From contig NC_083402.1 in assembly GCF_020745735.1 (NCBI RefSeq), positions 8,074,004 to 8,138,003 of the forward strand: a stretch of DNA of 64,000 nt, written 5' to 3'. Positions within the stretch are counted from its first letter, which is position 1; every line of letters begins with the position of its first letter. This DNA comes from Hemiscyllium ocellatum. Taxonomy: Eukaryota. Shown here one piece after another: positions 12,913 through 46,161 of this stretch. The translations under genes and the position numbers were made by a program. Below the pieces are notes generated by a model, which saw only the letters and a list, made by a program, of their open reading frames with translations, was not told the DNA's origin and did no database searches.

Positions 12913-13094
12913 CCAAGAAGACGATCCAAGGAAATCCAGAAGGCAGTGTGAATATCATCAAGGGAGGGCATAAGGGAGTGTGGCATGGCTGGATGGCATT
13001 TACTTGTGAGTAAGGCAGATGAGCTGAGGTTGTAGATTAACACATTGGTATGTGATTTAGTTGTTATTGCAGGGATGTAGTTGAGGGTGGGTAA

Positions 13095-17945: not shown

Positions 17946-18199
17946 GCTCTAAACCTTTCTGATTCATGTCCCTATTCAAATTTCCCATAAATGTTGTAAC
18001 TGTACCTACATCTAGCATTTTTTTTCTGGCAGTCCATTTCACATACAAACCCCGCTCTGTGTGAATACTTGCCCATCATGTCCCTCTTCATTCTTTCTCC
18101 ACTCATCTTAAAAATATGCCCCTTGTTTTGAACTACCCCCAAACCCTGAGACAAAGACGTTTGTTATTCACTGTCTGTATTCTCCTCACGATGTTATTA

Positions 18200-18860
18200 A
18201 CCTCAGGGATGATCACCTTGATGGGATTGCTCTATCTGCCCTCAATAGACAGATGGAAATTGAGGAGCAAAAATGTAAAGAGATCTCAGCTCTATGTAAG
18301 AATAATAGGGTTGTAATAAAAGGCAATTTTAACTTTCCAGATAGAGACTGGCACTGCCATAGTGTTTGGTGCTTGGACAAGTGAGGAAATTGTTAAATGT
18401 GTTCAAGAAAATTTTCTGTCTCAATCTGTAGCTGTCCCTATCAGAGAAGGAGCAAAATGTGACATTCTCTTGGAAAGTAAGGCAAGCGACTGAAACGTTT
18501 GGGAGCAGTGATCGTCATTTTGTTAGTTTTAGATTAGTTATGAAAAAGTATGGGCATTGTAAAGTAGTATATAATTAGAGTCAGGCAAATCTTGATGGCA
18601 TGGGACAGGAACTTTCAAACTTGATTGGAGTAAACTGTTCACAGGTAAAGGGACCACTGGCAATTGGAGTTTGCAAAACTGAGATAATGAGAGTTCAGAG
18701 ACATGATGTTCCTGTTACAGGGAAGAGTAAGGCTGGTAGGAGTCTGGGATAATGGATGAACAAAGATATTGAGGCTATGCTCAAGAATAATAAGGAATCT
18801 TTTGTGAGGTATAAACAACTGGGATCAAGCGAATCTCTTGAAAACTATCAAGAGTGTGTA
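18200..18860 (+). mobile_element. CR1 endonuclease fragment (paralog ~40560-41210)
   Basis: NRVVIKGNFNFP and following APE motifs. Confidence 0.7.
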
Positions 18861-18865
18861 GTGAT

Positions 18866-19860
18866 TGTAACAAGGTCAGCCAGGTGGGCCTCACAGAATT
18901 TGAGTTCCCTAACTGATGCAGGTAATCTGGTCCAATCAGGGAGTCCTGGCTGACAGATAAGAACAGGAGTGATAGATATCCTGTTCACTCTGAGGGAGCT
19001 GGATCAATGCCAAGGACTCTCCACATGGAAATAAGGGTTGATTTGGTGATGAAATACAAGCCTTTTTGGAATTATTTCAGTGACAACAGGGGTGAGATTA
19101 ATAATGTAACCATGCAAAAGTGCCTACTAGCTTCAAGAAAGCAGTACAACTGGCTTTACCAATGGAAAATGCAGCAAGTGAAGCCAATGAGTAGTAGGAT
19201 ATTCCCCTGGAAGTAGGCACCCACACCAGACCGACTGAGCTGAGGGAACCACCACCTGAGTGAAGGCAATTGCACAGCCTCACTCAGGACATATCCTGAA
19301 CAGAGGGACTCCAGGTCAGCCCAGAGCAAAACCCCAAAACAAAACCAAGCTTCAACCAAATAGTGACAACTTTCTTCAGGATCCAGGCCGGCACAGCATT
19401 GTCATTGCTGCAGGAATCAGGACTCGAGACAGTAAAAGAGTTTCACTCGACCTAAACTGAGTAAGAGAACTCATCAGTCAGTGTCCAGGAAAGTCCATCT
19501 ACATCTTATGTAGAATAATTAATTTGTTTCACAACACCTAAATCAGAACCAATCAAAATTGGAGTCTGGTTAAATGATGACCTATTCTAGTTGAGGTCAA
19601 TACCAGAATGGCCGTTGCAGTGATCATACAACCAGTCTTTAACAGAATTTGCCCTGGACTCTAACCCTTAGGTTTGTACAAGACCTCAGCAAGATTGAGA
19701 ACCCATACCGGGAAACCTTTCCAAATTAAGGATACAACTTCGGTTCCAGTCTCTTATGAGAAGCAGCTGGTTCAGTGATCACTGATTGTAGTAAAGGGTT
19801 TGGACCCGAGCTTGATCAGGTGAGGTTGGTTGAGAAAGATTCACCTTGCATCATCAACGT
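18866..19860 (+). mobile_element. Ty3/Gypsy LTR (TG..CA 18866-19079) plus decayed gag/protease; paralog at 41221-42220
   Basis: TG...CA LTR, degenerate PBS, LALPMENAASEA gag-like segment, EVNTRMAVAVI resembling the EVDTGAAVSVI aspartic protease motif. Confidence 0.75.
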
Positions 19861-20998
19861 TTTTGAATAGAAAATGGCTGCCTGAATGAATACTCAATGA
19901 GTATTTATATGGTTAACCATTTGCTTAAAATCTCCACAAAGGTGAATCAACTGATTGGGTTTCATAACTGGTACGATAGGATCAAAAAACAGGAAATGTG
20001 GAGGACCCTGAAACTATGAAACATAAATACAATAGTCAGCACCAAATCACCAAGGGATTCAGAAAAAGCTTCTCTGCAGGGAGTGGTTAGGATGTGGAAC
20101 CTGCTCATACACCAAGTGGTTGACACAGTGACCATTGTTGTACTGAAGGGGAAGCTTGATTGACACTTGAGGGAGGAAGCAACAGAGGGAAGTGCTGTCA
20201 AAGTGAGAAAAAGAAGGGTGGGGGAGGTGAACTTGTGCAGAACACGATCACCGGCAAAAACCAACTGCACAGATAGCTTGATTCTGTAAGTCCCAAAAGC
20301 CTGGGCCTCCTTTTGCTGTTCAGACGACTTCACAGGCACTGCTGATTTTTTTAGTCATTCATGGGATGAGGGTGTCACAAGTGAGGCCATCATTTCTTGT
20401 CTGTTCCTAACTGCCCTTGAGAAAGTACTGGTGAGCTGTCTCCTTGAAATGTTGCAGCCAATGATGTTAGAATCCTTGGTGACTTTTAATGATTTTTATT
20501 TTGTTTTATCAATCTTTGCTTAGAGTTGTGAACTGAGGACTGTTACCTGAGGAAGACAAACAAATTTGGCTTAATTTATGAGGCCAGATGTGGAAGTTAT
20601 TTGCAAGTTGATTCTGATCAAAACAATTCCATAGATTCTTCAACACTGGGGAAGAGCAGTGCATGTAAACAGACAGACGTTGGTCATTAATAAAGACAGT
20701 CCCTGGGAACTGGTTCCACCAAGTCTGGGAGAGACCGAATGCTCAAGGAGGTGGCAGATGTTCACTGGGAACTGGGACCTTGCAGTGAGATGGTCAGTCT
20801 GTCAGGGAGAGGCCACAGTTTCGAACTGGGTTTTGGGGAGGAGTCTGGCTGTTGAAGTAACAACATGAAGATCTGAAAGCCCCTTTCCTAACCGTCCATT
20901 GACAGCCAACGAAATGAGAGAGATAATGAGGTCCCTTGGCATTTGGATCTAATATTAGGAAAGCAGCCACATCCTTAACTAACTTGGTTCAACAATAA

Positions 20999-21300
20999 AT
21001 GAAAATTGAATGGGCTACAGAATGTTGCCAGACAGTCATTGCAAAACTGAAAGTAATTTTAACAAATAAATGTGTATTAACTGCACCGAACTTTAATAAA
21101 CCATTTCAATTAGCAGGAGATGTTTGCGATTTGGGGATTGGAGCAGTTCTCCTACAGGACAACGAGGCTGGGATGGAGAAACTTGTGGCTTATTTTTCAA
21201 AAAAGGTCGAACCAACATCAGAAAACCAACTTGATGATAGAAAAGGAAGTTAGCAGCTTTTCAACACTTTGGATTATATACTCAACATGGAGACAATGAG
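20999..21300 (+). mobile_element. Gypsy RT/RNase H junction fragment (paralog 42754-43050)
   Basis: LTAPNFNKPFQLAGDVCDLGIGAVLLQD..VAYFSKK. Confidence 0.85.
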
Positions 21301-21349
21301 ACTGTCTCTTTTACTGATCATAATCCACTGACGTTTGGAGATGGAGTTT

Positions 21350-22490
21350 AGATCTACAGCTGGAGAAGTGTGAGTGGACTGGAGGAAAGCTCATGTGGCA
21401 CCTTGATTTAAAAATTGAGCAAGGGATAAACCAGGTAGCTCCAGGCCAGTGAGTCTGAGCTCAGTGGTGGGGAATCCATTGGAAGCAATTTAAAGGGACA
21501 GAATTAATCTACACTTGAGGAGGCAGGGATTAATCAGAAACAGACAGCATGGCTCTGTTAAGGAGAGGGCGGCAGAAGATGGGAAATTATCTGCTGTTAG
21601 TCTGGCTTCAGTTGTTTGTAAGATTTTAGTGAACATTATTAAGAATGAGATTGCAGAGAACTTGGAAGTGCAGAGTAAAATACAGCTGAGTCAGTATGGC
21701 TTCATCAAAGGCAGGTCATGCCTGAAATAAATCTGTTAGAAATCTTTGAGGAGGAAACAGGCAAGTTAGATAAAAGAGATCAAAGTTGGTCATTAATGAG
21801 AACATGACCAACTTGGATTTCCAGATGGTTTTTGACAAGGTGCTCCAGTGGAAGCTGCTAAATAAGATAAAAGCCCATGGTGTTAGGGATTGGCCTGGTG
21901 TGACAATACTCAGTCTTTCAGAGGTATATTTTGTCCTGGTATTTATTTTTTCATGAAAAGAGGTTGAGATAGAGGTGAAAAAAAGTCTGTTTCAAAACAT
22001 TAAAGTAAACAGCTCGTGAACAGTTGAAACAATAGAAGCACTCTGAACGAGTGGGTTAAGCTCCGACATAACCAGGATTTCAGTTTAACTTTGAGAAGCT
22101 GCTGGGGTTTGGAAGCTGCTATACATTGCTTCCTGAAGGCAAATGGAATATTATCCTTCATTGTAAGAGGGATGGAGTTTAAACAGATGGAGGTTATGCT
22201 GCAGCTGTATAGGGGGCTGGTGAGACCACACCTGCAGTATTGTCTCCTTAATTCCGAAAGGATGCATTGGGACTGGAGATAATGCAGGGGAGGTTCACTT
22301 GGTTAATTCCAGAATTGAGGGGCTTGGCTTATGAGGGAAGATTGAGTCGGCTGAGACTACATTCATTGGAATTTAGAAGAATGATGGGGGAATATTACAA
22401 AAATATGTAAAATTATGAAGGAAATGGATAAGGTAGAAGCAGGGACGTTGTTTCCACTGGTGGGTGAAACTAGAACTAGGGGGCATCAGC
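21350..22490 (+). mobile_element. Degenerate CR1 ORF2 fragments (paralog ~43110-44260)
   Basis: RPVSLSSVVG, QYGFIKGRSCL, MLQLYRGLVRPHLQYC. Confidence 0.8.
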
Positions 22491-23389
22491 CTTCTGTTAT
22501 AAAGCCTCAAATTATCTTGAGAATGTGACTTAAATAAAGTTCTGGGTAATACACATTAATGAATCAAAACCAGCAAATCCATTCTAAAAGATGAAAGACT
22601 GGATAATCAAGGTTTGTTCAATGTATCATTGTATCACTGTAATCTATTGCCAGACACTCTTGTCTTATGGTCCTGTTTCACACCACCTGATGAAGGAGCA
22701 GCGCTCAGAAAGCTAGTGCTTCCAAATAAACCTGTTGGACTATAACCTGGTGTTGTGTGATTTTTAACTTTGTCCACCCCAGTCCAACACCGGCTCCTCC
22801 AAATCTTGTAAATGAACTCTGTCTTGTTTAAAACTAAATGGTTTGACCAGCCAATTCTCTCCTGCAATATCCACTTTACACCTGTTTAAAACAACGAGCA
22901 AAGTTAAGGTCTGGGCTCCCTTCTTAAAGGGTTTGAGGGATCTGGCCTGGTCCATAACAGAATGGGGACTCTTTACAGGATTTGTTGTTTAGTTGCAAAC
23001 TGGGATTCGAGTTGTTGGACTTGAAGGCAGCGAATGGTAAGTGTTAGTGTCTGTTGTTCTGGAAGTTGGTTTTGGTTGGTGTTGCTTGGTGTAGTCAGGG
23101 CTCTTTCAGTCAGCAAAAGTTTTCTGGGGGTGGAGGAAGTGACCTTGGGGGTTTTACAAAAAGGTGGTTAAAGTAGCCTGCATCTCTGCTGTCTTACTTT
23201 TTTTTTGATATTTTAAACTTCTGTCAATTGACTTCCACCTCGCACCTCTACCTATCCCCCATTAATTAGTTTAAAACACTCAAAATAGTTGTTTAAAAAG
23301 GCACAAAGATCAAGAGCTGTATTCTGGGGGAAGTCTTGTCAGATTTTTGTTAACTCACACACAAACAATGGTCCAAATGACCTCTTTCT

Positions 23390-24330
23390 ATGCAGTAAAT
23401 GTGGTGAGGGCATGGAATGCGCTGCCTGTGGGAGTGGCAGAGTCAGAATCATTGGTGACCTTTAAGCTGCAATTGGATAGGTACATGGAAAGGTGCTTCA
23501 GCCCGGAGAAATGTTTGGCACAATATTGTGGGCCGAAGGGCATGTTCTGTGCTGTATTGTTCTATGTTCTATGTTCAAGCCCTCCAGCCCTGGTATCATT
23601 CTCCTCAATCTTTTCTGAACCCTTTTGAGTTTCACAGCATCTTTCCTACAGCAAAGAGACCAGAAATGAATGCAGTATTCCAGAAGTGGTCCAACCAGCA
23701 TCCTGTACAGCCATGATAAGAGCTCCTCATTCCTGTACTCAATGCATTGATCAATAAAGGTGAGTTTACCAAATGCTTCCTTCACTAAACAGTCTACCCT
23801 TTGACTCCACTTTCAAAGAACAATGAACCTGCACTCCAAGGTCTCTTTGTTTGGCAACACTCCTCAGTACTTTACCAGGAAGTGTATCAGTCCTGCCCTG
23901 ATTTGCCTTAACAAAATGCAACACCTCAAATTTATCTAAGTTAAACTCCATCTGCCACTCCTCAGCCCATTGGCCCATCTGATCAATGTCCCGTTGTCCT
24001 CTGTGATAACCTTCTTTGCTGTTCACTACACCTCCAATTTTGGTGTCATCTGTAAACTTACTGACCATTTCTCTGATATTCACATCCGAGCCATTTATAT
24101 AAATGACAAGAAGCAGTGGATCCAGTACCGATCCTTGCAGCACACCGCTGGGTACAGGCCTCCAGTCTAAAAAGCAATCCTGTGCTACCACACTCTGTGT
24201 CCTATCTTCAAGCCAGTTATGTATCTAAATGGCTAGTTCCCCCGGTATTCCATGTGATCTAACCTTGTTAACCAGTCTATCATGCAGAACCTTGTCAAAT
24301 ACTTTGCTGAAGTCCAATTAGGTCATGTCT
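23390..24330. mobile_element. Head-to-head CR1 fragments at the right boundary of unit A
   Basis: Plus-strand 3' end at 23390-23580; minus-strand RT (GVLQGSVLDP, KFTDD) at 23580-24330. Confidence 0.8.
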
Positions 24331-29400: not shown

Positions 29401-30492
29401 TATGACTCTAGTGATAGTCAGCATGGTTTTGTGCAAGGGATATTGTGTCTCACAAACTTGATTGAGTTTTTTGAAGAGGTAAACAAGAAAATTGATGAGG
29501 GCAGAGGGGTTAAAATGGTTTACTGAGACTTTGGTAAATCCTTTGATAAGGTTCCCCATGGTAGACTAATTAGTGAAGTTAGATCCCATGGGATTCCGGG
29601 TGAGCTTGGCAAGTGGATGCACAATTGGCTGAAAGGCAGAAGACAGAGAGTGACGGTGGAGGGAGGGTTTTGTTCTGGAGGCCTGTGACCAGCAGGGTTC
29701 CACGGGGATCAGGGCTGGGCCCAGTTTTGTCACTCAATAATTTGAAAAGTTTAGGTAAGAACACAGAAAGACTGTTTTGCAAGTTTGCGGTTGATACCAA
29801 CATTGATGGTACATTTAACAATGAAAGAAGGTTTTCTTAGAATACAAAGAGATCGTAATCAAATGGGAATGGGCTGAAGAGTGACAGATGGAGTTTAAGA
29901 TAAGTGTGAGGTATTGCACTTTGGGAAAACAAACAAAGGGAAGACTTACACAATTAAAAGTAGGGCCTGTGAATGCAGGGCGAGGGTAAGTCCCACATGG
30001 CTGTGATGCCTCACACAGTCAGATGGACATTGGGGGAATGTAGTTGCACTGATGGAACTGTTCCTGATGAAGATTGTAACCAAGAGGGACACATCAGACT
30101 GTTGCACTTTCCTGTTTGAGGAGATGATCTCAGTGTCAGTATAACTTTGGGGCATTTGGAGATATAACTGAATGTTCTGAGTCTGTCAATGTCTTACAAT
30201 ACTGATATCAGAATGCACCTAACAATATCAGCACAACATAGTACATTAAATATGGACTAAAATTAAATTTGAAACCCGAAGCTAAAACACTACAGATGGT
30301 GGAAATTTTAAATAAACATCAAAATGCTGCAAATACTCAGCAGGGCAGAGAGTACCTGTGGAAAGAAACAGGGTTAATGTTTTAGTTCCATGTCCTTTCA
30401 CCAGAAAATCAAATCACAAAACATTCACAGAATCTGTTCCACTCTCACTGTGCACCTTCTACAGGCTGAAGAATGTGGGAACGGTTTCTTAC

Positions 30493-30840
30493 CATGTACC
30501 TGCAGCCGAGTCTCTTTCTGGATCAGATACTGAGAGTTGAATCTTGACCTGTATTCCACCAGACACAGGTAAGTGTGATTGTCCCTCACACTCAGCTGGT
30601 TTATCCTGGTCGAGGCGTTTCCCTCCTCTGGGTTCCCGATGAGCTCGTACAGATTTCCACCGTGTCCAGTTGTCCAAGTTCCCTGTGATTGGGCTGTAAA
30701 TGTAACGATGTGTTGGTAGGGCTCCTTCCTCATCCAGGAAACAGTGGTCAGGGTGTAGGAGTCCCAGCGACTGAAGATACAGGGTAAAGTAACTGAATCT
30801 CCCTCTGTCCCACTCACCACTGGGACATTTCCCTGAGCAG
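30493..30840 (-). CDS. V-set Ig exon V2b, Siglec-like, Arg replaced by Leu
   Basis: Acceptor TTTCCTCAG|, donor CATG|GTAAGA, 348 nt, phase 1-1. V-set hallmarks: VTLPC, VSW, RY/LY-ELIGNP, D-x-x-T-Y-L-C, G strand ETRLQVH. Confidence 0.9.
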
Positions 30841-33800
30841 CTGAGGAAAGGACAAACATCAGAATGGATGAGGTCAGTGTGCAGAAGTTCTTATTTCAAT
30901 ATGTTATATTCCTTTCAACTTCACAATAAAATGAACAATTAAAGACTCCACTCACATCTCTAACAGGTCTGTCCTAGATATTCCCCAACAAGAGTCACCC
31001 TGATCAAAATGTCTCCTCGCCACTCAATTTGAAAACCTTGATTACAAGATACTTCCATGATGTGGGGGTGCCAGTGTTGCACTGAGGTGGACAAAGTCAG
31101 AAGTCACACTGCACCAGGACTTCACCTGATGCAGGAGCAGTGCTCTGAACCTTGTTATTTCAAATAAACCTGTTGGACTATAACCTGGTGCCGTGTGACC
31201 GCTGAAGGTACTTACAGATCGGATCCATTGAACCCTCCTGAATTCATTCATGCAGAACCCGCCGCCCGATGCTCAATACTAATATACTTTAAACAAGGTC
31301 AAGGATTTTACAGCCTCCCCCCTCACTCTGTTGCTCAAACACTTTCAAAGTATTGACCACACTCTTGTGTGAAGGAGAGCCCCCTGGTGTCATTCCTAAT
31401 GTAACCATTCACCAGCTCCAACCTGTGACCTTTGAAATGAGCACAGGTTAATTTAAACTCAGAGTCCAGATTACATTTTCCTACACTGAGTAAAATATTT
31501 GGGTGCAGGAGGAGGGGGATAACCAGCCATGTGGCTCTTTGCTGCATGAACTTAAAAGAGGAACTATGGGATTAAATGTTTCCACATTCTTATTTAAATT
31601 GGTAATCTGTTATTTTGCAATTGTTCCCCTGTTTGACTTCTGTTCACAAGAGCAAATAGCCTCTCAGAATCTGCATTGTCAAGCTCCTCAGGATCTTGAG
31701 GAAGGGTCACTCTGCCTGAAACGTTAACTCCAATTTCTCTCCACAGGTGCTGCCAGACCTGCTGAGCTTTTCCTTACACTTTCCATTTTTGTTTCTGATT
31801 TGCAGCATCTGCAGTTTTTTGTTTGTATTTTCCTCAGGATGTTCGCTGTTTCATTAATTTCTACTTTTGTTTATTTGGTCATGGGTGTCACTGGCCCAGA
31901 TGATGTGCATTTATTGTCCATCCTGATTGCCCAGGAGAAGCTGCCTTTTTCAACTGCTGCAGCCCTGAGGTGTCGGGGTTATCCAGAGTAATTTAAGGGA
32001 TTGAGTTTCAAGACTTTGACCCAGCAACAGTGAAGGAATGCCAATAGAGTACAAATAGACTCAGACTTCTCTGCATTGACCAAGGCCCCAATAACAGTGA
32101 GAACAGTCCCAGCCCTGTCAACCCTGCAAAGGCCTCCTCAGTAACATCTAGGAGCTAGTGCACAGACGGATCGACTATCAGTCTCACATGGTCCAACTCA
32201 CAGAACCATAACTTACAATATCACAGACACCACGATCACTGTCCCTGGACACAGCCTGACCCACCACCAGGACAGAGCCAGCAGAGGTGGAGGCACAGTG
32301 GTATACTGTCAGGAGGGAGTTGCCCAGGGACTCCCCAATATGAAGTCCCCACGTTAAAGACTACATTGTAAGCCCATTGAACTGCAATCTGTAACCTCAC
32401 AATCCACATTAACACACCCCCACACCAACATTCCCGTCAGGCTGGGAGATCAATGAAGAGACATGTGATTTTGCTGCATGCAACCAGATGAAAGTGAGGA
32501 TTGCAGATGTTGGAGATCAGAGTGTGTATAACACCAGGCAAACTGAAATGTGTGAGACCAACACAATGAATCTACAATGTCCCCAGGACTACTTGCTCAT
32601 CAAACAGCAGAAACAGCACACAACAGAGCCACCCCATAACCAATGGATCAGATGGCTCTGCAGTCCTGCTATAGACAGTCCTGAATGGTGGGGGACAATT
32701 GCTGCACCAGTTGTTCCAGTACAGAAAGCGCTTGATGTTGTCTACATGGACTTCAGTCAAGCCTTTGACAAGTTCCCTCACTGCAGACTGGTAAAAATGT
32801 GAAGTCACATGGTATCGGGGTGAGCTGGGAAGGTGGACACCGAACTGACTTAGTCATAGTAGACAGAGGGTAACAATGGAATGGAGGGTTGTAACAAGTG
32901 ATGTTCCACAGGGATCAGTGCTGAGATGTCTGCTGTTCATGGCCTATCCAATGATTTGGAGGAGAACGTGTCTGGTCTAATTTGTAATTTTGCAGGCGAT
33001 GCAAAGATTGGTGGAGTCGAGGATAGTGAGAAGGATTGTCAGAAGGTTCAGCAGGATACAGATCAGTTCAAAGCCCTTGGAATCCTTAACCAACCTTATC
33101 GGGAATGTCCCTGCAGCTGAGGGGATGCAGCAGATCAAGAAGGCAGCTCACCATTCCCTTCTCCAGGGTAATTAGGGATGGCCAATATCGGCTGACCCAG
33201 CATGTGACACCCACGTCCCCTTGAACAATGAAAAGATAACAATACTTCCCAGTCAGGATGGTCTGTATCTGATGCCATTTTTTACACTGAGGTCATAGAG
33301 GTCACTACTTTGGAAGGTGCTGGTGGAGGAAGTGTTGCTGCCTTGCTGCAGTGTATTTTATTGTTATTTTTATTGTTACAATACTGTTGGGGTGGGGGAG
33401 TTCCAGGATTTTGACCCAGTAACAGTGACAGGGAGCAATATATTTTACTGCTCTCTTCCAGACAAGTGGGGAGTATTCCATCACACTTCTAACTGGTCAA
33501 TATGCTTTGGAGTCAGGAGGTGTGTTAATTTACAGGATCTCCAGCCTGTGACCTACTCTTGGAGTCACAATTCCATTTACACTCCTGGGTTCACTCCTTG
33601 TCCACAACAGAGTGAGTCATTCAGGGGGCAGTTAAGGGTCAACCTCATTACAGTAGGTATGGGGTCGCATGTAGGTCAGACCATTTAGGATACAGATTTC
33701 CCTCCCTAAAAGACATGAGTGAACCATGTTTTTTTTGTCGGAGGTGCCTACATGGTCTTTATTAAACTGGCTTTTCAGTCGAGATTCCTTTCAAATTCAA

Positions 33801-34339
33801 ATTTCACAATCTGCCATGGATTGGAAAGTATTCCCCAGGACATTTGCCTCTGCAGAGTCCTTCTCCCCCCATCCATCTATTTTCTGCTCAGCCAATAGAA
33901 AATGAAGATAGAAACAGTGAGGTTTTCAGCCAATGCGAGCTGAGGGTTCCCTCACTTTGAGACGTGCTCATCCAATGAGGGCTCAGAATTTATGGATCTC
34001 TTTTTCTCACCCAATGCCAATAGAGCAGGACTGTCATTGGGAAGGGGGTCTTGGAGCTTGAATCCTTGATGATGTTGTGTCTGTTCCCTGCCCCAAAAAA
34101 CTGAAGCCGGTCTGACCACAGCAAATGAGTGACTGTGGGAGGTTTCAGAGTCGGAAATGGGTTGGTCTGTAAATCCCAGCCAGGTCTCTCTCTCTCTCTC
34201 TCTCCTTCTCACTGCCTCCTGCCTGAGACCAACTGGAAGAGCCCAGGAGAAGAACCCAACCCGAGAGCTCCTGGACCTGGTGGAGCCTGTCCCCATTGAG
34301 TTGTCAGGGCAGTGACACCATCCGAACATTGTTCCTCAC

Positions 34340-34726
34340 CTTCCACTTCCAGGCGTGTTCGATACCTTGTTTGCAAATTGCCGATATTGAGCTCCACTCG
34401 ACACCGATAGAAACCAGCATCCTCCCGGCTCAGTCCCTCCATCATTACTGAGGCATCTTTGTTGGTGAGACTCCCCACGAATCTGAATCGATTCCCACCA
34501 TCCCGCCGTCTCACATTCTCACACAGCTCACCCTGGGAATGGTCTGGACCAGGATATGTACACTTAAAGATAAAAGCCCGTGTTTCCTCCTTGTACCATA
34601 AGATGGAGCCGGTGAGTGTGAGGTGAGTGTCAGGGTGGGTGAAGCTGCAGGGTAAGACAGCGGAGCCTCCTTCCTCAGCCCACACTCCATCCGCGATTGT
34701 CATTGACCAACCATTAACAGACATCT
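34340..34726 (-). CDS. V-set Ig exon V1b, Siglec-15-like, essential Arg present
   Basis: Acceptor (CT)n CCCCTCACAG|, donor GAAG|GTGAG, 387 nt, phase 1-1, no stops. Motifs WSMT..AVLPCSFTHP..ILWY..FKC..ELCE..RFRFVG..YRCRVEL..TRLEVE resemble, from recall, Siglec-15 (WSMQ..AVLPCTFTHP..FRC..ELCQ..RFRLLGN..YFCRVEF). Orthology not established. Confidence 0.9.
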
Positions 34727-35574
34727 CTGTGAGGGGAGAGAAAGAGAGAGAGAGAGGATATGAGCACAGCACAGACACCAAACAGTGAGGAAAAACACTG
34801 AATCTGTTGTATGATGAGAAAATATATAACATTGTTCAGTCATGGTTTATAAACTAACCTGGGACAGTGTGGAATGAGCTTCAGGCTGGAGCACAACAGG
34901 AGGTTTCAGGGGGTTTGTGTTCGACTGTGGGTGTTTGTTGCTGTTGGTTGATGAGAGTTTTTGGTGCCTGAGAGTTTCCAGGAGACCCAGAGTGATCTGA
35001 AGAGCAGGACTCAGGGCCCTCCCTGCAGAACCTTTTCTATTTCCCATTACCTTCTACTCTATTACCGAGCCAGCCTTCAGCAACCTGGCTCATTCATCAG
35101 GCGTAGCAGAGGGATGGGGTACACAGTGAAAGTATTGCAGAGGGTGAAGGTGATACACAGAGACATGAAGAAGGAGAACTGAAGTAAAAAAATAAATAAG
35201 TCATAATTCCAGAAAACTGCTGTCTCATTAGAGAGAGGTGACTGATGGTGATTTAACCTGAGGGCCACTCTGCCTCAGACAAGGGGCGCGGTTGAGAAGC
35301 TGAGACCTTCATGGTCCCCACAGACAGTATGGGAATTAAACCCACATTGTTGGCATTACTCCACATCGCAAACCAACTGTCCAGCCAACCAAGCTAACTG
35401 ATCCAACAAGATGATCCAAGGAAATCCAGAAGGCAGTGTGAATATCATCAAGGGAGGTCATAAGGGAGTGTGGCATGGCTGGGTGGCATTTACTTGTGGG
35501 TAAGGCAGATGAGCTGATGGTGTAGATTAACACATTGGTATATGATTTAGTTGTTATTGCAAAGACAGATAAAA

Positions 35575-38305
35575 ACAAGGACTGAGGTAAAAACAAGGAC
35601 TGCAGATGCTGGAAACCAGAGTCGAGATTGCTGGAAAAGCACAGCAGGTTAGGCAATATCCGAGGAGCAGGAAAATCAATGTTTCGGGCAAAATCCCTTC
35701 ATCAGAAATAGCGGCAGGGTGCCTGCAGAGTGGAGAGACAAATGAGACGGGGTAGGGGTGGGGAAAAGTTAGCATTGAGTACAATAAGTGAATGGGGATG
35801 GGGAAGAAGGTGATAGGTCAGAGAGGAGGGTGGAGTGGAAGGCTTCTTTAGGGTAGGCAAGATTGACAGCAGAGGTGTCAATGTGTTGCTGGAAAAGCAC
35901 AGCAGGTCAGGCAGCATCCAAGGAGCAGGAGAATCGACGTTTTGGGCATGAGCCTTTCTTCAGGAATGAGGAGAGTGTGCCAAGCAGGTTAAGATAAAAA
36001 GTAGGGAGGGGGGATTGGGGGAGGGGTGTTGGAAGTGCGATAGGTGGAAGGAGGTTCAGGTGAGGGTGATAGGCCGTTGTGGGGGTGGGGACGGAGAGGT
36101 CAGGAAGAAGACTAAAGGTTAGGAAGGTGGTGCTGAGTGGTGCTGAGTTCGTGTGTTGGGACTGATATAAGGTGGGGGGAGGGGAAATGAGGAAACTGGA
36201 GAAATCTGAGTTTATCCCTTGTGGTTGGAGGGTTCCTAGGCGGAAGATGAGGCGCTCTTCCTCCAGCCGTCGTGTTGCTATGGTCTGGCGATGGAGGAGT
36301 CCAAGGACCTGCATGTCCTTGGTGGAGTGGAGGGGGAGTGGGAGTGTTGATCCATGGGGTGGTTGGGTAGGTTGGTCCGGGTGTCCCAGTGGTGTTCTCT
36401 GAAATGTACCGCAAGTCAGCGGCCTGTCTCCCCAATATAAAGGAGGCCACATCTGGTGCCGTGGATGCAGTAAATGATGTGTGTGGAGGTGCAGGTGAAT
36501 CTGTGGCAGATATGGAAGGATCCCTTGGGGACTTCGAGGGAGGTAAGGGGAGAGGTATGGGCGCAAGTTTTGCATTTCTTTCGTTTTCAGGGGAAGGTAT
36601 CGGGAGTGGAGGTTGGGTTGGTGGGGGATGTGGACCTAACAAGGGAGTAACGGAGGGAGTGGTCTTTTTGGAATGCTTATAGGGGAGAGGAGGGAAATAT
36701 ATCCCTTGTGGTGGGGTCCGTTTGGAGGTGTTGGAAATGATGACGGATGATATGATGTATATGGAGGTTGGTGGCGTGGTAAGTGTGGACCAGTAGGGTT
36801 CTGTCCTGGTCACGATTGGAGGGGCGAGGCTCAAGGGTGGAGGAGCAGGAAGTGGAGGAGATGCAGTGGAGGGCATCGTCGATCATGTCTGGGGGGAAGT
36901 TGCGGTCTTTGAAGAAGGAGGCCATCTGGGTTGTTCGGTATTGGAACTGGTCCTTCTGGGAGCAGATGTGGCGGAGACGAAGGAATTGGAAATATGGGAT
37001 GGCGTTTTTACAGGGGGCAGAGTGGGATGAGGTGTAGTCTAGGTAGCTGTGGGAATCGGCCGGTTTATAGTTAATGTCCGTGTTGATTCGGTCATCCAAG
37101 CTAGAAATGGAGAGGTCTAGGAAGGGGAGGGAGGAGTCTGAGATAGTCCAGATAAATTTGAGATCGGGATGGAAGGTGTTGGTAAAGTGGATGAACTTTT
37201 CAACCTTTCTCATGGGAGCACGAGGCAGCGCCGATACAGTCATCGATGTAGCGGAGGAAAAGGTGGGGGGTGGTGCCAGTGTAGTTGCGGAAGATGGACT
37301 GTTAAACATATCCTACGAAGAGGCAGGCATAGCTGGGGCCCATGCGGGTGCCCATGGCTACTCCTTTGGTTTGGAGGAAGTGGGAGGATTGGAAAGAGAC
37401 GTTGTTCAGAGTGAGGACCAGTTCAGTCAGTCAAAGGAGGATGTCAGTGGAAGGGTACTGGTTGGTACAGTGGGAAAGGAAGAAGCGGAGGGCTTTGAGT
37501 CCTTCATGATGGGGGATGGAGGTGTACAGGGACTGGACGTCCATGGTGAAGATAAGGTGTTGGGGACCGGGGAAGCGAACATCATGGACGAGGTGGAGGG
37601 CGTGGGTGGTTCTTGGACTAAGGGGGACAGGACCGTGTCAAGATATGCGGAGATGAGTTTGGTGGGGCAGGAGCAGGCTGAGACAATGGGTTGGCCGGGG
37701 CAGTCAGGTTTGTGTATTTTGGGCAGGAGATAGAAACGGGCAGTGCGGGGTTGTGGGACTATGAGGTTGGAAGCTTTGGACGGGTGAGAAGTTGGAGTGG
37801 GTGAGAGGGGTGGAGAGGTTGAGGCAGTTAATGTCGCGGTGGCAGTTGGCAATGAAGAGATCGAGGTCAGGAAAGAGGCCAGCACAGGGTGTCCAGGTGG
37901 ATGGGGTGTGTTGGAGGCGGAAGAAGGGGACGTCAGTGGGTAGGCGAGAATCCTGGTTGAAGAAGTAGGCGTGGAGGTGAAGGCGGTGGAAGAATTGTTC
38001 GATGTCTCGCCGCATGTTGAACTCGTTAATCCGAGAGCGTAGGGGAATGAAGGTGAGGCCTCTGCTGAGGATCGATCGTTCATCCTCAGAGAGGGGGAGG
38101 TCTGGAGGGATGGTGAAAACACGTCAGGGCTGGGAGCTAGGACCTGGTGTGGGGCTGGAACTGGGAGTGGGGGCGGGGTAAGGCGTGGGGACGGGAATCG
38201 GGGCGGAGACGGAGATCAGGGTAGGGGTGGGGTTCGGCGTGGGGGGCGGGGTTAGGCTTGCGAACGGAGATCGGCGTGGGGGCATCTGCAGTCCTCACTT
38301 TCTCC
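35575..38305 (-). mobile_element. Penelope-like element (paralogous insertion in unit B)
   Basis: RT and GIY-YIG fragments (TKDMQVLGLLHRQT..RRLEEERLIFRLGTLQP), two terminal pLTR-like segments. Confidence 0.88.
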
Positions 38306-38914
38306 AACAAGCTTGACAGCACAATGTCCCGGGTATAGAACCATCAGATGAGACATGTGGGGGAAGGGGAATGTAAAAGAGGAGGGGGTATTGCGACATT
38401 GATCAAGGAGTCAATTGCTGTAATAAGATGGATGATATCTTAGAATATTCTTCAAATGAGGCCACATGGTACAATGTAAAAACAAAACCCCATCACCACC
38501 CTCTGTCTCCTACCATCACGTCAATTTTGTTTCCAATTCATATTCTTCCCCTGAATCCCATGTGATCTGACTTTACTAACTGGTCTACCATGCGGAACCT
38601 TGTCAAAGGCTTTGCAAAATGACCAAGTCAATAACATCTCCCATCTTGCCCTCATCAATCTTTCTGGTTATATCATCAAAAAAGTTAATCAAGTTTGTGA
38701 GACATGATTTCCCCTGCACACAGCAGTGCTGACTATCCCTTATCCCTGGTGTTGGGTGAGGTTTTTAAACTTTGTCCACCCCAGTCCAACACCGGCACCT
38801 CCACATTATATTCCTTAACAGTCCTAACTTCTTCACATGCCTGTAAATCCTATTTCTCAGAACCTCCTCCAAGAACCTATCCACCAGTGATGTCAGACTC
38901 ACAGGGTTATAGTT

Positions 38915-39226
38915 TTTTAGATTAGACTTACAGTGTGGAAACAGGCCCTTCAGCCCAACAAGTCCACACCGACCCGCCGAAGCGAAACCCACCCATACCC
39001 CTACATTACCCCTTACCTAACACTACGGGCAATTTAGCATGGCCAATTCACCTGACCCGCACATCTTTGGACTGTGGGAGGAAACCGGAGCACCCGGAGG
39101 AAACCCACGCAGACACGGGGAGAACGTGCAAACTCCACACAGTCAGTCGCCTGAGTCGGGAATTGAACCCGGGTCTTCAGGCGCTGTGAGGCAGCAGTGC
39201 TAACCACTGTGCCACCGTGCCGCACC
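38915..39226 (-). mobile_element. Full-length HE1-type tRNA-derived SINE, present only in unit B
   Basis: A box TGGCACAGTGG, B box GGTTCAATTCC, CR1-derived 3' tail, TAGTT duplication at 38910-14 and 39227-31. Empty site at ~16220 in unit A. Confidence 0.92.
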
Positions 39227-42200
39227 TAGTTCCCAGGCATCTCCTTGCAGCCTTTCTGCAATAAAGGCATAATGTTAGACAACGTCCAGTCCTCCAGCAC
39301 CTTACCTTTGGATGCAGATGATGCAAATATCTCTGCTAGAGGCCCCATAATTTCTTCCCTAATGTGCCATAATGCCCTGGGATACACATGACCATGTCCT
39401 GATGATTAATCACCTTTATGTTTTCAGGAACTCCAGCATTTCCTCTTCTGAAATGTAGGCTGTTTTCAAGCCATCAATATTTATTTTCCCAAGCTCCATG
39501 TCTTAAAGAGTGACTTAAAAGGGGGAAAGAGAGTTGGAGAGGTTTGGGCAGGAATTCTCACAATCTTGGAGATTGAAAGTTAGGCACCAGTGATCTTAAT
39601 ATTACAGTCTGGTGAAACCACCACCAGTCATCTCTTGCTAATGAGAGATTGGCCCGATGCCCCCTGGGACTATGGTGAGTTTACATTTACAATAAGGGAT
39701 ATGGAGGGGCCAGATTTGGAAATATTGTGAGTATATGAAGATGACAGACCCAATGCTGTGGAAGAATTTGAACCTGAGGAGGATAATCTTTCATTTTATG
39801 TCTTTTTCAATTCACGAGCAGTTCTGGGCACCACACCTTGGGAAGGATATTCTGTACCGGGCCACCAATCAGCTCACACTACTCTGATGTGTGTACAAGC
39901 AGGCACCACAAGCAGGTTGATACAAAGGTGCCAGGATGGACGTCAGGTTATGTATGAACTTCCTGTAATAGATCACCAGCCCCTGGAACGACCCAAGCTG
40001 TGGTACTGATGTGGAAATTAGGGTCACCTCTGCCTGCCCTCTTCCAATGGGTGTTACCCAGTCTTATTGACTCTGTCGTTTAAGTAGGACACTCAGGGTG
40101 CCTGGATTCTATATTTACCCCTAACTAATTCACCTCACCTGCACATCTTTTGGATTGTGGGAGGAAACTGGAGCACTCAGAGGAAACCAAAGCAGACACA
40201 GGGAGAATGTGCAAACATTGCATAGACAGTCGCCCAAGGCTGGAATTGAATGCAGGCCCCTGGTGCAGTGAGGCAGCAGTGCGAAACACTGAGCCAAAGT
40301 GTCGCTCTAAACCTTTCTGATTCATGTCCCTGTACAAATTTCCTATAAATGTTGTAACTGTACCTGCATCTAGCATTTTTCTTCTGGCAGTCCATTTCAC
40401 ATACAAACCCCCCTCTGTGTGAATACTTGCCCATCATGTCCCTCTTCATTCTTTCTCCACTCACCTTAAAAATATGCCCCTTGCTTTGAACTCCCCCCAC
40501 TCTGAGACAAAGACCTTTGTTATTCACTGTCTGTGTTCTCCTCACGATGTTATTAACCTCGGGGATGATCACCTTGATGGGATTGCTCTATCTGCCCTCA
40601 ATAGACAGGTGGAAATTGAGGAACAAAAATGTCAAGAGATCTCAGCTCTATGTAAGAATAATAGGGTTGTAATAAAAGGCAATTTTAACTTTCCAGATAG
40701 AGACTGGCACTGCCATAGTGTTTGGTGCTTGGACAAGTGAGGAAATTGTTAAATGTGTTCAAGAAAATTTTCTGTCTCAATCTGTAGCTGTCCCTATCAG
40801 AGAAGGAGCAAAATGTGACATTCTCTTGGAAAGTAAGGCAAGCGACTGAAACGTTTGGGAGCAGTGATCATCATTTTGTTAGTTTTAGATTCGTTATGAA
40901 AAAGTATAGGCATTGTAAAGTAGTATATAATTAGAGTCAGGCAAAATTTGATGGCATGGGACAGGAACTTTCAAACTTGATTGGAGTAAACTGTTCACAG
41001 GTAAAGGGACGACTGGCAATAAGAGTTTGCAAAACTGAGATAATGAGAGTTCAGAGACATGATGTTCCTGTTACAGTGAAGAGTAAGCTGGTCGGAGTCT
41101 GGGATAATGGATGAACAAAGATATTGAGGCTATGCTCAAGAATAATAAGGAGTCTTTTATTAGGTATAGAAAACTGGGATCAAGCGAATCTCGTGAAGAA
41201 TATCATGCGTGTGTAGTGATTGTAACAAGGTCAGCCAGGTGGGCCTCACAGAATTTGAATACCCTAATTGGTGCAGGTAATCTGGTCCAATCAGGGAGTC
41301 CTGGCTGACAGAGAAGAACAGGAATGCTAAATATCCTGTTCACTCTGAGGGAGCTGGATCAATGCCAAGGACTCTCCACATGTAAATATGGGTTGACCTG
41401 GTGATGAAATACAAGCCTTTTAGTGGAATTATTTCAGTGACAACAGGGGTAAGATTAATAATGTAACCATGCAAAAGTGCCTACTCGCTTCAAACAAGCA
41501 GTACAACTGGCTTTACCAATGGAAAATGCAGCAAGTGGAGCAGATGAGAAATAGGATATTCCCCTGGAAGTGGGCACCCGCACCAGACCGACTGAGCTGA
41601 GGGAACCACCACCTGAGTGAAGGCAATTGCACAGCCTCACTCAGGACATATCCTGAATAGAGGGACTCCAGGTCAGCCCAGAGCAAAACCCCAAAACAAA
41701 GCCAAGCTCCAACCAAATAGTGACAAATTTCTCCAGGATCCAGGCTGGCACAGCATTGTAATTGCTGTAGGAATCAGGACTCGAGACAGTAAAAGAGTCT
41801 CATTCGACCTAAACTGAGTCAAAGAACTCATCAGTCAGTGTCCAGGAAAGTCCATCTAAATCTGGTGTAGAATAATTAATTTGTTTAACAACACCTAAAT
41901 CAGAACCAATCAAAATTGGAGTCTGGTTAAATGATGACCTATTCTGGTTGAGGTCAATACCAGAATGGCCGTTGCAGTGATCATACAACCAGTCTTTAAC
42001 AAAATTTGCCCTGGACTCCAACCCTTAGGTTTGTACAAGAGCTCAGCGAGATTGAGAACCTCATACCGGGAAACCTTTCCAAATTAAGGATACAACTTCG
42101 GTTCCAGTCTCTTATGAGAAGCAGCTGGTTCAGTGATCACTGATTGTAGTAAAGGGTTTGGACCCGAGCTTGATCAGGTGAGGTTGGTTGACAAAGAGTC

Positions 42201-44453
42201 ACCTTGCTTCATCAACATTTTTGAATAGAAAATGGCTGCCTGAATGAATACTCAATGAGTATTTATATGGTTAACCATTTGCTTAAAATCTCCACAAAGA
42301 TGAACCAACTCATTGGGTTTCATAACTGGTACGATAGGATCAAAAAACAGGAAATGTGGAGGACCCTGAAACTATGAACCATAAATACAATAGTCAGCAC
42401 CAAATCACCAAGGGATTCAGAAAAAGCTTCTCTGCAGGAAGTGGTTAGGATGTGGAACCTGCTCATACACCAAGTGGTTGACACAGTGACCATTGTTGTA
42501 CTGAAGGGGAAGCTTGATTGACACTTGAGGGAGGAAGCAACAGAGGGAAGTGCTGTCAAAGTGAGAGAAAGAAGGGTGGGGGGAGAACTTGAGTCTGGCT
42601 GTTGAAGTAACAACATGAAGATCTGAAAGCCCCTTTCCTAACCGTCCATTGACAGCCAGTGAAATGAGAGAGATAATGAGGTCCTTTGGCATTGGATTTA
42701 ATATTAAGAAAGCAGTCACATCCTTAACTAACTTGGTCGAAAAATAAACGAAAATGGAATGGGCTACAGAATGTTGCCAGACAGTCATTGCAAAACTGAA
42801 AGTAATTTTAACAAATAAATGTGTAATAACTGCACCGAACTTTAATAAAGCATTTCAATTAGCAGGAGATGTTTGTGATTTGGGGATTGGAGCAGTTCTC
42901 CTACAGGACAACGAGGCTGGAATGGAGAAACTTGTGGCTTATTTTTCAAAAAAGCTGGAATCAACATCAGAAAACCGACTTGACGATAGAAAAGGAAGTT
43001 AGCAGCTTTTCAACACTTTTTCTCCATGTTGAGTATATAATCTAATGAGACTGTCTCTTTTACTGATGGTAATCCACTGACATTTGGAGATGGAGTTTAG
43101 ATCTACAGCTGGAGAAGTGTGAGTGGACTGGAGGAAAGCTCATGTGACACCTTGATTTAAAAATTGAGCAAGGGATAAACCAGGTAGCTCCAGGCCAGTG
43201 AGTCTGAGCTCAGTGGTGGGGAATCCATTGGAAGCAATTTAAAGGGACAGAATTAATCTACACTTGAGGAGGCAGGGATTAATCAGAAACAGACAGCATG
43301 GCTCTGTTAAGGCGAGGGAGGCAGAAGATGGGAAATTATCTGCTGTTAGTCTGACCTCAGTTGTTTGTAAGATTTTAGAGAACATTACTAAGAATGAGAT
43401 TGCAGAGAACTTGGAAGTGCAGGATAAAATACAGCTGAGTCAGTATGGCTTCATCAAAGGCAGGTCATGCCTGAAATAAATCTGTTAGAAATCTTTGAGG
43501 AGGAAACAGGCAAGTTAGATAAAAAAGAACAAAGTTGGTCATTAATGAGAACATGACCGACTTGGATTTCCAGATGATCTTTGACAAGGTGTTTCAGTGG
43601 AAGCTGCTAAATAAGATAAAAGCCCATGGTGTTAGGGATTGGCGTGGTGTGACAATACTCAGACTTTCAGAGGTATATTTTGTCCTGGTATTTATTTTCC
43701 ATGAAAAGAGGTTGAGATAGAGGTGAAAAAAAGTCTGTTTCAAAACATTAAAGTAAACAGCTTGTGAGGCTTTGGGTGTTTTTTTTACAAGTTGAAACAA
43801 TAGAAGCACTCTGAACGAGTGGGGTTAAGCTCCTACATAACAAGGATTTCAGTTTAACTTTGAGAAGCTGCTGGGGTTTGGAAGCTGCTATACATTGCTT
43901 CCTGAAGGCAAATGGAATATTATCCTTCATTGTAAGAGGGATGGAGTTTAAAAAGATGGAGGTTATGCTGCAGCTGTATAGGGGGCTGGTGAGACCACAC
44001 CTGCAGTATTGTCTCCTTAATTCCGAAAGGATGCATTGGGACTGGAGATAGTGCAGGGGAGGTTCACTTGGTTAATTCCAGAATTGAGGGGCTTGGCTTA
44101 TGAGGGAAGATTGAGTCGGCTGAGACTACATTCATTGGGATTTAGAAGAGTGATGGGGGAATATTACAAAAATATGTAAAATTATGAAGGAAATGAATAA
44201 GGTAGAAGCAGGGACGTTGTTTCCACTGGTGGGTGAAACTAGAACTAGGGGGCATCAGCCTTTTGTTATAAAGCCTCAAATTATCTTGAGAATGTGACTT
44301 AAATACAGTTCTGGGTAATACACATTAATGAATCAAAACCAGCAAATCCATTCTAAAAGATGAAAGACTGGATAATCAAGGTTTGTTCAATGTATCGTTG
44401 TATCACTGTAATCTATTGACAGAAATTCTGTGTCTTATGGTCCTGTTTCACAC

Positions 44454-44488
44454 CACCTGATGAAGGAGCAGCGCTCCGAAAGCTAGTG
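44454..44488 (+). ncRNA. Minimal type I hammerhead ribozyme motif in a Penelope pLTR
   Basis: CAC-CTGATGA-A-GGAGC-AGC-GCTCC-GAA-AGCT-A-GTG: stem I CAC/GTG, stem II GGAGC/GCTCC, palindromic AGCT for stem III. The paralog at 22684-22718 has one stem II mismatch. Confidence 0.7.
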
Positions 44489-46097
44489 CTTCCAAATAAA
44501 CCTGTTGGACTATAACCTGGTGTTGTGTGATTTTTAACTTTGTCCACCCCAGTCCAACACCAGCTCCTCCAAATCTTGTAAATGAACTCTGTTTTATTTA
44601 AAACTAAATGTTTTGACCAGCCAATTCTCTCCTGCAATATCCACTTTACACCTGTTTAAAACAACGAGCAAAGTTAAGGTCTGGGCTCCCTTCTTAAAGG
44701 GTTTGAGGGATCTGGCCTGGTCCATAACAGAATGGGGACTCTGCAGGATTTGTTGTTTAGTTGCAAACTGGGATTAGAGCTGTTGAACTTGAAGGCAGCG
44801 AATGGTAAGTGTTAGTGTCTGTTGTTCTGGATGTTGGTTTTGGTTGGTGTTGCTTGGTGTAGTCAGGGCTCTTTCAGTCAGCAAAAATTTTCTGGGGCTG
44901 GAGGAAGTGACCTTGGGGGTTTTACAAAAAGGTGGTTAAAGCCAAGCTGTGGGAATGAGCAAACAAGCTGGAGTTGGAGCTGCCTCCTTCCGTGAGGAAA
45001 GGACAGATACTTACAGCAGGAGCTCAACATTTACATTTGTTGGAAACTCCTTCAGAATCTTTAGAGAGGCTAAAGTTCAGGTGAAAATGAAGCAGCTTGG
45101 GTTAGAGGCAAAAGGAAAAAACCCAAGGACAACCGAACCTTGTTAAAGGAGCAGCTCCTTCACAAAAGGAATTTCAGGTTATGGTCAGCAAGTGGGTAAG
45201 GACAGCGGAGTCCATGGAAAGGTCACCCATGGTCTTATTGGATGGTGGGGCAGGCTCAATGGGAAAACAGCTTCAAGGTAAGAAATAAAAGGTGAGAAGA
45301 GAGTTGAGGAGAGATACGTTTTCATACAGAGGGATTTAAGAGTTTGGCACTCACTGTCTGAAAGAGTGTTAGAGTTAGAAACGTGAGTAACATTTAACCA
45401 GTATTTTGGGATTTAGTAGACTTCCCATTTGCCTCTTCAGTAGCCTGCATCTCTGCTGTCTTACTTCTTTTTGATATTTTAAACTTCTGTCCAATTGACT
45501 TCCACCTCCCACCTCTACCCATCCCCCATTAATTAGTTTAAAATCCTCAAAACAGTTGGTAAAAAAGGCACAAAGATCAAGAGCTGTATTCTGGGGGAGG
45601 TCTCGTCAGATTTTTGCTAACTCACACACAAACGATGGTCCAAATGACCTCTTTCTATGCATTAAATGTCCAAGAGTCCGTGAATCGGTAATGAAACCTG
45701 AAAGTAATGAATCTTCACATGAGGAATAGTTAATTGTCACTGGCCGACAGTAATTAACACTCATCATATTGACAGAAGAGCTTTGAGGCAGAAACAGACA
45801 AGATGGAACTTTCTACACTGAGTTTAGTTTGTATCTACCAGAGAAAGGTTGTCACTGCACATCATTCAGGAAATCTCAATGGTCAACCAACTGCATGGTT
45901 TAGTTACAGCAAGTGGAACATTTTGACTTTCTGTGTTCTGTATTTGTAGTATTATTTGTAAGAAATTGAGGCATACACTTTTGTCTCATCATTGTCACTT
46001 CTCAATCAGTTCTGTCCCAGTATCTCTCTGAAACCTGGGTGTGCCTGCAGTGTTCTGTATCTCCCCTCACTCTCTGGAAGTGTTAGAAAGTACTTAC

Positions 46098-46161
46098 TGT
46101 AAGCCTGCACTGAGACTGACAGGAGGACTGCAGAAAGACAAACGTAGAGGGACTTCATCAT
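46098..46161 (-). CDS. Signal-peptide (leader) exon of a Siglec-15-like Ig-superfamily receptor gene
   Basis: Minus strand reads ATG ATG AAG TCC CTC TAC GTT TGT CTT TCT GCA GTC CTC CTG TCA GTC TCA GTG CAG GCT TAC A|GTAAGT = MMKSLYVCLSAVLLSVSVQAY. It has a basic n-region, hydrophobic core and V-Q-A cleavage motif, a consensus donor, and phase 1, matching all four downstream V acceptors. Too short for the ORF track. Confidence 0.85.

Follow-up and report, generated by a model that had tools for sequence, protein, structure and literature searches.

Introduction

Among vertebrate receptors for 'self' sialic acids, the Siglecs are the principal ones. The binding template known from sialoadhesin (Siglec-1) consists of an arginine on the F strand and aromatic residues on the A and G strands, and mammalian Siglec families typically contain a minority of members that have lost the arginine. 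To our knowledge, ligand is bound by the N-terminal domain only in the known Siglecs, and diversification of Siglec specificity is known almost only from mammals.

In Siglec-15, the V domain is held by two disulfides (C64-C142 and C95-C104). R143 pairs with the carboxylate of sialic acid, W44 contacts the N-acetyl group and Y154 stacks on C9 of the sialic acid (glycerol side chain), with Y87 and the main-chain carbonyls of V150, R153 and E155 adding hydrogen bonds (PMC10264397).

The region described here is a window of 64,000 nucleotides from Hemiscyllium ocellatum (contig NC_083402.1, positions 8,074,004 to 8,138,003). A sequence-only reading had pointed to two exons in this window, V1a and V1b, as paralogous Siglec-like V domains that keep the sialic-acid arginine and differ around it. 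The analysis leads us to lean, with some caution, towards the reading that V1a and V1b lie in a duplicated module, that their core was kept and their rear half diverged, and that the two sites would be expected to differ in glycan recognition.

Results

Exons and gene model

The exons and repeat units of the locus are the following.

34340..34726, minus strand: V1b exon, first (membrane-distal) V-set domain, with four Cys, Arg-positive, without N-glycan sequon, Leu117
11858..12244, minus strand: V1a exon, V-set domain 3 in one gene model with V1b, Arg-positive, with NLS sequon, Phe117
30493..30840, minus strand: V2b exon, Arg-negative two-Cys V-set domain, follows V1b
2069..2416, minus strand: V2a exon, Arg-negative two-Cys V-set domain, follows V1a
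46098..46161, minus strand: leader (signal peptide) exon, donor GT at 46096-46097, the sole one in the window
29969..45669, no strand assigned: duplication unit B with V1b and V2b, from self-blastn blocks
1545..23402, no strand assigned: duplication unit A with V1a and V2a, from self-blastn blocks, with extra insertions at 3353-5611 and 7068-10587

Both V1 exons are 387 nt long, of phase 1-1, and have the same splice signals, an acceptor cccctcacAG preceded by a polypyrimidine tract and a donor GTgagg. The reading frames and all splice sites are intact in both. The V1b exon codes for a V-set domain of 128 residues (128 whole codons), which matches Pfam V-set with E=2.7e-12; V1a is also a Pfam V-set domain. 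Two RefSeq models, XP_060703220 (871 aa; P0231) and XP_060690378 (600 aa; P0159), contain the leader, V1b, V2b, V1a and V2a exactly and in this order, with V1b as residues 23-150 and V1a as residues 268-395 of both. The leader exon matches residues 1-21 of P0231 at 100%. V1b and V1a are domains 1 and 3 of one predicted H. ocellatum receptor, with the putative layout leader - V1b - V2b - V1a - V2a - (further module) - transmembrane segment - tail.

The longer model, XP_060703220, additionally holds a third module (V1c-V2c), a transmembrane segment and an ITIM-like tail. Its ILYAEI fits the ITIM pattern [ILVS]-x-Y-x-x-[ILV] as a motif match only; the shorter model, P0159, is without ITIM. A further motif match of this kind, VTYAAV, is present in the sister genes P0168, P0156 and P0233. 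In P0231 and P0159, the transmembrane segments are free of Lys and of other charged residues. Between V2b and V1a, neither a leader nor a transmembrane or tail exon was found, and the possibility of two separate genes for V1a and V1b was dropped, as no second exon of these kinds lies between the modules. A search of the 64-kb window for a C2 exon found none.

The GeneIDs LOC132829852 and LOC132821685 have the leader and the first four V exons in common and differ in their transmembrane and tail exons, one tail with an ITIM-like motif and the other without. Alternative receptors from one locus are one possible reading; another is that the models extend across adjacent genes.

Tandem duplication

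The V1a/V1b pair arose through tandem duplication of a V1-V2 module of 22-28 kb. Between V2 and V1, unit A holds about 2.3 kb (3353-5611) and about 3.5 kb (7068-10587) that are missing in unit B, probably post-duplication insertions (transposons or G-rich repeat). The spacer between the units contains inverted repeats of about 700 bp with 77% identity (23581-24284 and 28248-28958). G-rich blocks lie at 8484-10379, 13263-15089 and 35870-37784, with a GC content of 0.52-0.55 and a GC skew reaching 0.53. They recur both within the units and across them; one direct repeat, at 13643-15089, has a length of about 722 bp. With periods up to 500, Tandem Repeats Finder reported no repeat scoring 200 or above.

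Siglec-type fold

In a sequence search of the PDB, Siglec-15 (7ZOZ) was the best match (E=4e-13), the next one following at 5e-6. Outside the cartilaginous fish and lungfish, the best named matches were tetrapod Siglec-15. Profile comparison of the shark family with the Siglec-15 orthologues by hhalign gave a probability of 100 and E=2.6e-47. An AlphaFold2 model of V1b, built with 77 family domains, had a mean pLDDT of 84.7, with residues 63-66 and 70-76 poorly defined (pLDDT below 50 at 70-76). When this model was compared to the PDB with Foldseek, the top 18 matches were all Siglec V-sets, headed by sialoadhesin with sialyllactose (1QFO; E=4.9e-9, TM score 0.70-0.77); for Siglec-15 (7ZOZ) the TM score was 0.74-0.76 at 32% identity. 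The proposal that the V1 exons encode Siglec-like domains was borne out: both are intact V-sets, and their closest solved or named relatives are Siglec-15 and other Siglec V-sets.

Across the alignment with Siglec-15, residues W6, C26, C55, C68, C108 and R109 show no variation. The Cys residues C64/C142/C95/C104 of Siglec-15 correspond to C26/C108/C55/C68 of the shark V1 domains, so that those of the extra C'-C'' disulfide (C95-C104 in Siglec-15) are kept as C55 and C68, besides the B-F pair. The Siglec-15 layout of one V-set followed by one C2-set domain was not found, V1 preceding a second V-set exon in a module that repeats. Absent from P0231 and P0159 is also the transmembrane Lys by which Siglec-15 couples to DAP12/DAP10 (PMC7226832). 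Because it has neither a C2-set second domain nor the transmembrane Lys, the gene is not a Siglec-15 orthologue.

Differences between V1a and V1b

The exon alignment confirmed the 25 nucleotide differences counted earlier. The 18 amino acid differences were recovered as 17 among the 128 whole codons and one at the first codon, which is split and reads Lys in one copy and Ala in the other in the RefSeq models; the overall amino acid identity is 86.7% (tblastn). The identical stretch GWSM...ILWYK, put at about 40 residues, extends over 41 (residues 5-45). Local differences between the two domains, together with the arginine codon, are given here.

34398..34400, minus strand: Arg109 codon, CGA in V1b (CGT at 11916-11918 in V1a), equivalent of Siglec-15 R143
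34359..34379, minus strand: codons 116-122, G strand, NLQTRYR in V1b and KFQSWYG in V1a; strands 115-118 and 123-127 in the model
34500..34511, minus strand: codons 72-75, C''/C''-D region, RRRD in V1b and IQRH in V1a; low model confidence
34464..34472, minus strand: codons 85-87, D-E loop, SLT in V1b and the family-conserved N-glycan sequon NLS in V1a

Each of the local changes first read from the sequence was present: VIQRH to VRRRD, KFQSWYG to NLQTRYR through five single-base changes that are all non-synonymous, NLS to SLT, and the silent change of the essential arginine codon from CGT to CGA. The loss of an N-glycan site from V1b likewise stands, NLS being the ancestral state, with Asn85 in 79 of 84 family domains. 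The gain of arginines holds in number, with 12 Arg in V1b and eight in V1a, but Lys residues are fewer and acidic residues more numerous in V1b, so that both domains have a net charge of -2, and Arg122 may be old. It is not clearly a new gain because a Y-R-T-R-L G strand (Y121-R122) occurs in both Chiloscyllium punctatum and C. plagiosum; of these two species only C. punctatum has R120-Y121-R122. This type of G strand may be old rather than newly gained.

When polarized on the family, the states V3, R73, S85, T87, F105 and L117 are derived in V1b and Y4, K46, H75 and V91 in V1a; positions 72, 103, 116, 119, 120 and 122 are ambiguous. V1b departs from the family at the well-conserved positions 73 (Q), 85 (N) and 117 (F).

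The predicted sialic-acid site

The claim that both paralogs keep the sialic-acid arginine was upheld, R109 aligning with Siglec-15 R143. The A-strand tryptophan W6, present in V1a, V1b and altogether 71 of 72 family domains, aligns with W44. Siglec-15 Y87 corresponds to shark R49, which is not conserved, and V150 falls inside a 3-residue deletion of the shark FG loop. R153/Y154/E155 correspond to shark residues 116/117/118.

This register, with a 3-residue gap in the FG loop, was obtained from MAFFT alignment with the orthologues, inspection of the G-strand motif and hhalign. Residue 117 is taken as the Y154 equivalent because the Siglec-15 motif [K/R]-[Y/F]-[E/Q]-[S/T]-x-x-G-[T/V]-x-L-x-V aligns without gaps with K-F-Q-S-W-Y-G-T-R-L-E-V of V1a. 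A pairwise HMMER register to 7ZOZ, in which R120-Y121 of V1b would equal R153-Y154, was rejected since it could not be carried through to the conserved T-x-L-x-V motif that closes the domain. With it fell an enrichment of differences at contact sites (3/7 positions, p=0.049); in the corrected register two of six contact-equivalent positions differ, and the enrichment is not significant (p=0.18).

Opposite Y154, V1a carries Phe117, the residue of 69 of 84 family domains, and V1b carries Leu117. Opposite R/K153, residue 116 is Lys in V1a and Asn in V1b, and opposite G159, which is invariant in the Siglec-15 orthologues, residue 122 is Gly in V1a and Arg in V1b. The Trp-Arg-aromatic triad is complete in V1a, as it is in 53 of 74 full-length family domains, and reduced to Trp and Arg in V1b. 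The neighbourhood of the arginine is indeed altered in V1b, where five of residues 116-122 differ from V1a, but remodelling is too mild a term for it, with one of the three canonical contacts missing.

Distribution of substitutions

The clustering of the differences, regarded beforehand as the signal, was corroborated. At most one residue difference in some 67-residue window has p=0.0003, at most three nucleotide differences in some 201-nt window p=0.001, and the longest identical run between V1a and V1b p=0.014. The G-strand cluster alone, five differences in 21 nt, is not significant (p=0.30). Differences sit at sites that vary in the family (mean entropy 2.01 versus 1.10 elsewhere, p=0.0003). 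The near-neutral ratio of non-synonymous to synonymous changes was supported in substance by a Nei-Gojobori omega of 0.84, not different from 1, but the ratio of about 18:7 became 17:6 when counted in whole codons.

Over 11.7 kb of the duplicate outside the exons, the substitution divergence was 4.03%. It was 6.46% in the V1 exon (p=0.015) and 5.46% in the V2 exon; jointly, both exons exceed the non-exon divergence with p=0.007. Between V2b and V2a, residues differ in the regions of the B-C and F-G loops.

The exon was divided into a front part (codons 5-71) and a rear part (codons 72-128) after the data had been seen, which makes the p-values for the halves somewhat optimistic: the rear part diverged by 9.94%, about 2.5 times the flanking non-coding sequence (p=0.0006), with 13 non-synonymous changes where 5.3 are expected at the non-coding rate (p=0.0025) and four synonymous ones where 1.6 are expected (p=0.08), and the front part has one non-synonymous change against 6.3 expected (p=0.012). 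Among 171-nt windows, no more than 1.9% have at least as many substitutions as the rear part. In codons 5-71, dN is 0.0065, dS 0.046 and omega 0.14, and this part of the domain, strands A to C', is under purifying selection as judged from these rates. In codons 72-128, dN is 0.107, dS 0.106 and omega 1.0, not above 1, so that the comparison of V1a with V1b gives no strict signal of positive selection there, and relaxed constraint suffices for the coding pattern by itself. The raised synonymous divergence of the rear half would fit exchange or older ancestry better than selection.

A third paralogue and the mosaic signal

The closest other domain is the first domain of the P0200/P0237 type, from a neighbouring H. 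ocellatum gene, which is 90% identical to V1b, compared to 87% between V1a and V1b. Over residues 5-58, V1a and V1b group together against this domain at six of seven informative sites. Over residues 72-122 they do so at none, and P0200 agrees with V1b at eight sites and with V1a at five (Fisher test of front versus rear grouping, p=0.0002). The maximum chi-square test with this paralogue placed a break at residues 58-72 (p=0.002-0.004). Two histories would fit these data: the halves may have different ancestry through conversion or exchange, or the rear halves of both copies may have accelerated while the front halves froze. In the rear half of P0200, states like those of V1a and of V1b alternate at the scale of single residues, and no donor carrying R73, L117 or NLQTRYR was found among the 86 family domains or in a further protein search with V1b; some substitution in place is therefore needed under either history.

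The family in elasmobranchs

Sharks and rays have dozens of V1-type family genes in many genera, mostly named 'uncharacterized' or, loosely, 'Siglec-15'. Searches of the literature on shark or elasmobranch Siglecs yielded no description of the family. Arg109 is replaced by His, Gly, Cys, Tyr, Ser or Lys in 13 of the 86 aligned family V1 domains, a set that includes V1a and V1b, and this loss parallels the Arg-mutated members of mammalian Siglec families.

Most close paralogues, among them P0003, P0156, P0157 and V1c (P0231 residues 513-640), have the G strand F-G-S-G-K-G-T-x-L-x-V, which resembles the J-segment motif of antigen receptors; the G strand of V1a and V1b is of another type, Q-x-x-Y.

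Discussion

The receptor gene would belong to a large elasmobranch family derived from a Siglec-15-like V domain. V1a and V1b are both likely to be maintained as working Siglec-type domains, because each retains the fold, the two disulfides, the tryptophan of the A strand and the arginine of the F strand. Their rear half, comprising the C''/C''-D region, the D-E loop, the start of F and the G strand, has diverged about 2.5 times as far as the surrounding non-coding sequence at positions that are hypervariable in the family. The cause would be segment exchange between family members, diversifying substitution or a combination of the two. V1a would be left with a canonical site, Trp6-Arg109-Phe117 and a D-E loop whose glycosylation is predicted from the sequon, and V1b with an altered one, with Leu117, Asn116, Arg120/122 and Arg72/73 and without the glycan. 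From this difference between the sites, the two domains would be expected to differ in glycan affinity or fine specificity. A difference in fine specificity for sialoglycans, as proposed from the sequence, is plausible, and the site of V1b would be the less canonical one. V1a is an internal domain, which counts against this reading, given that the Siglecs known to us bind ligand through the N-terminal domain only.

The pattern could also arise by plain drift, with the core constrained, the loops and G strand neutral, and the two domains functionally equivalent or V1b decaying. The omega values of 0.84 for the whole exon and 1.0 for the rear half, neither different from 1, agree with this, as do the location of the differences at positions tolerant of change across the family and the lack of significant enrichment at contact-equivalent positions. 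Drift should not exceed the neutral rate, however, and both the rear half and the two V exons taken together exceed the divergence of the non-coding sequence. V1b moreover deviates at the well-conserved Q73, N85 and F117, and frames and splice sites are intact in both copies; we consider drift an unlikely explanation. Another explanation is a gene-conversion mosaic, in which V1a and V1b share recent ancestry in the front half and the introns, and one rear half or both were replaced from another family member or go back to an older ancestor in common with it, so that the differences were imported. Such an origin concerns how the differences arose and is compatible with a functional difference. 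The flip in grouping with P0200 between residues 5-58 and 72-122, the higher identity of V1b to the P0200-type domain than to V1a, and the joint rise of synonymous and non-synonymous divergence to about 0.106 in the rear half, versus 0.04 outside, all speak for it. The P0200 states interleave by residue and not in tracts, however, no donor turned up among the 86 family domains or in the further search for R73, L117 or NLQTRYR, the five G-strand changes are single non-synonymous bases, and codons 110-128 contain no synonymous change; a mosaic is a serious possibility, if not quite a probable one.

A different objection is that the domains may not be sialic-acid lectins at all and that a Siglec-15-like scaffold may bind protein or other ligands, with Arg109 kept for another reason. 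The Y87 of Siglec-15 is not conserved, the V150 loop is deleted, Arg109 is lost in 13 of 86 family domains, and the architecture and signalling parts are unlike those of Siglec-15. The zebrafish Siglec-15 orthologue, too, is reported to bind the tested glycans poorly (PMC7226832), which counts against a lectin function. On the other hand, the Trp-Arg-aromatic triad is found in 53 of 74 full-length domains, Arg109 was retained across a synonymous codon change, and the best structural neighbours of the model are sialoside-bound Siglec domains. Loss of the arginine in a minority of members is itself a trait of mammalian Siglec families. We regard the absence of lectin function as rather doubtful, and prefer to read V1a and V1b as two maintained Siglec-type domains with sites that probably differ.

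It is conceivable, though we would not expect it, that one receptor carries serial, separately tuned Siglec-type lectin domains at positions 1, 3 and 5, which read sialoglycans in combination and signal through an ITIM. If this were true, the array would consist of a canonical Trp-Arg-Phe domain in V1a, an Arg-rich, aromatic-less and unglycosylated one in V1b and one with a J-segment-like G strand in V1c, diversified through module duplication and segment exchange. We know of no described counterpart of such an intragenic 'Siglec array' among Siglecs. The interest of the locus lies in a cartilaginous fish in which a Siglec-15-derived lectin-type domain is repeated within one predicted receptor. 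Opposite the residue of Siglec-15 that stacks on sialic acid, V1a and V1b offer a naturally occurring Phe/Leu contrast, and thus a simple pair of constructs for specificity residues, and their receptor allows a test of whether internal lectin domains can function.

Comparison with known systems

Siglec-15 (vertebrate, DAP12-coupled; 7ZOZ) is the best sequence match to the shark V1 domain. Both have the B-F disulfide and a second one between C' and C'', the essential Arg within a CRVE motif and the A-strand Trp, and the G-strand motif [K/R]-[F/Y]-[Q/E]-[S/T]-x-x-G-T-x-L-x-V of Siglec-15 is kept by V1a. In contrast to Siglec-15, the second domain of the shark receptor is a V-set instead of a C2-set domain and the V1-V2 module occurs two or three times. 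The shark transmembrane segment is without Lys, and the longer model ends in a tail with the ITIM-like ILYAEI. The shark FG loop is three residues shorter, the Y87 equivalent is lost and V1b has Leu at the Y154 position.

The N-terminal domain of sialoadhesin (1QFO) follows the same template as shark V1, an F-strand Arg with aromatics on the A and G strands, of which V1b is without the G-strand one. The identity is only about 20%, however, the disulfide pattern is another one, and 16 C2-set domains follow in sialoadhesin.

Several Arg-positive Siglec-15-like V domains in tandem within one protein are also found in lungfish XP_043935463 (P0001), as in the shark receptor. The lungfish protein has seven such domains in succession, which do not alternate with an Arg-negative V2, and then a C2-like domain, and its identity to V1b is about 30%.

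The CD33-related Siglecs of mammals and the shark family are alike in being clustered multigene families with tandem duplication and fast change of the ligand face of the V-set domain. In both, the essential Arg is present in most members and lost in some, many tails are of ITIM type, and there are signs of exchange between paralogues. Unlike the CD33-related Siglecs, the shark receptor has a V domain of the Siglec-15 type with a B-F disulfide, is without C2-set domains, and carries lectin-type domains also at internal positions of one polypeptide; the shark family has an origin of its own within the elasmobranchs. By analogy, the shark gene would resemble the CD33-related inhibitory Siglecs in its tail motifs and mode of evolution, on a lectin domain of the Siglec-15 type.
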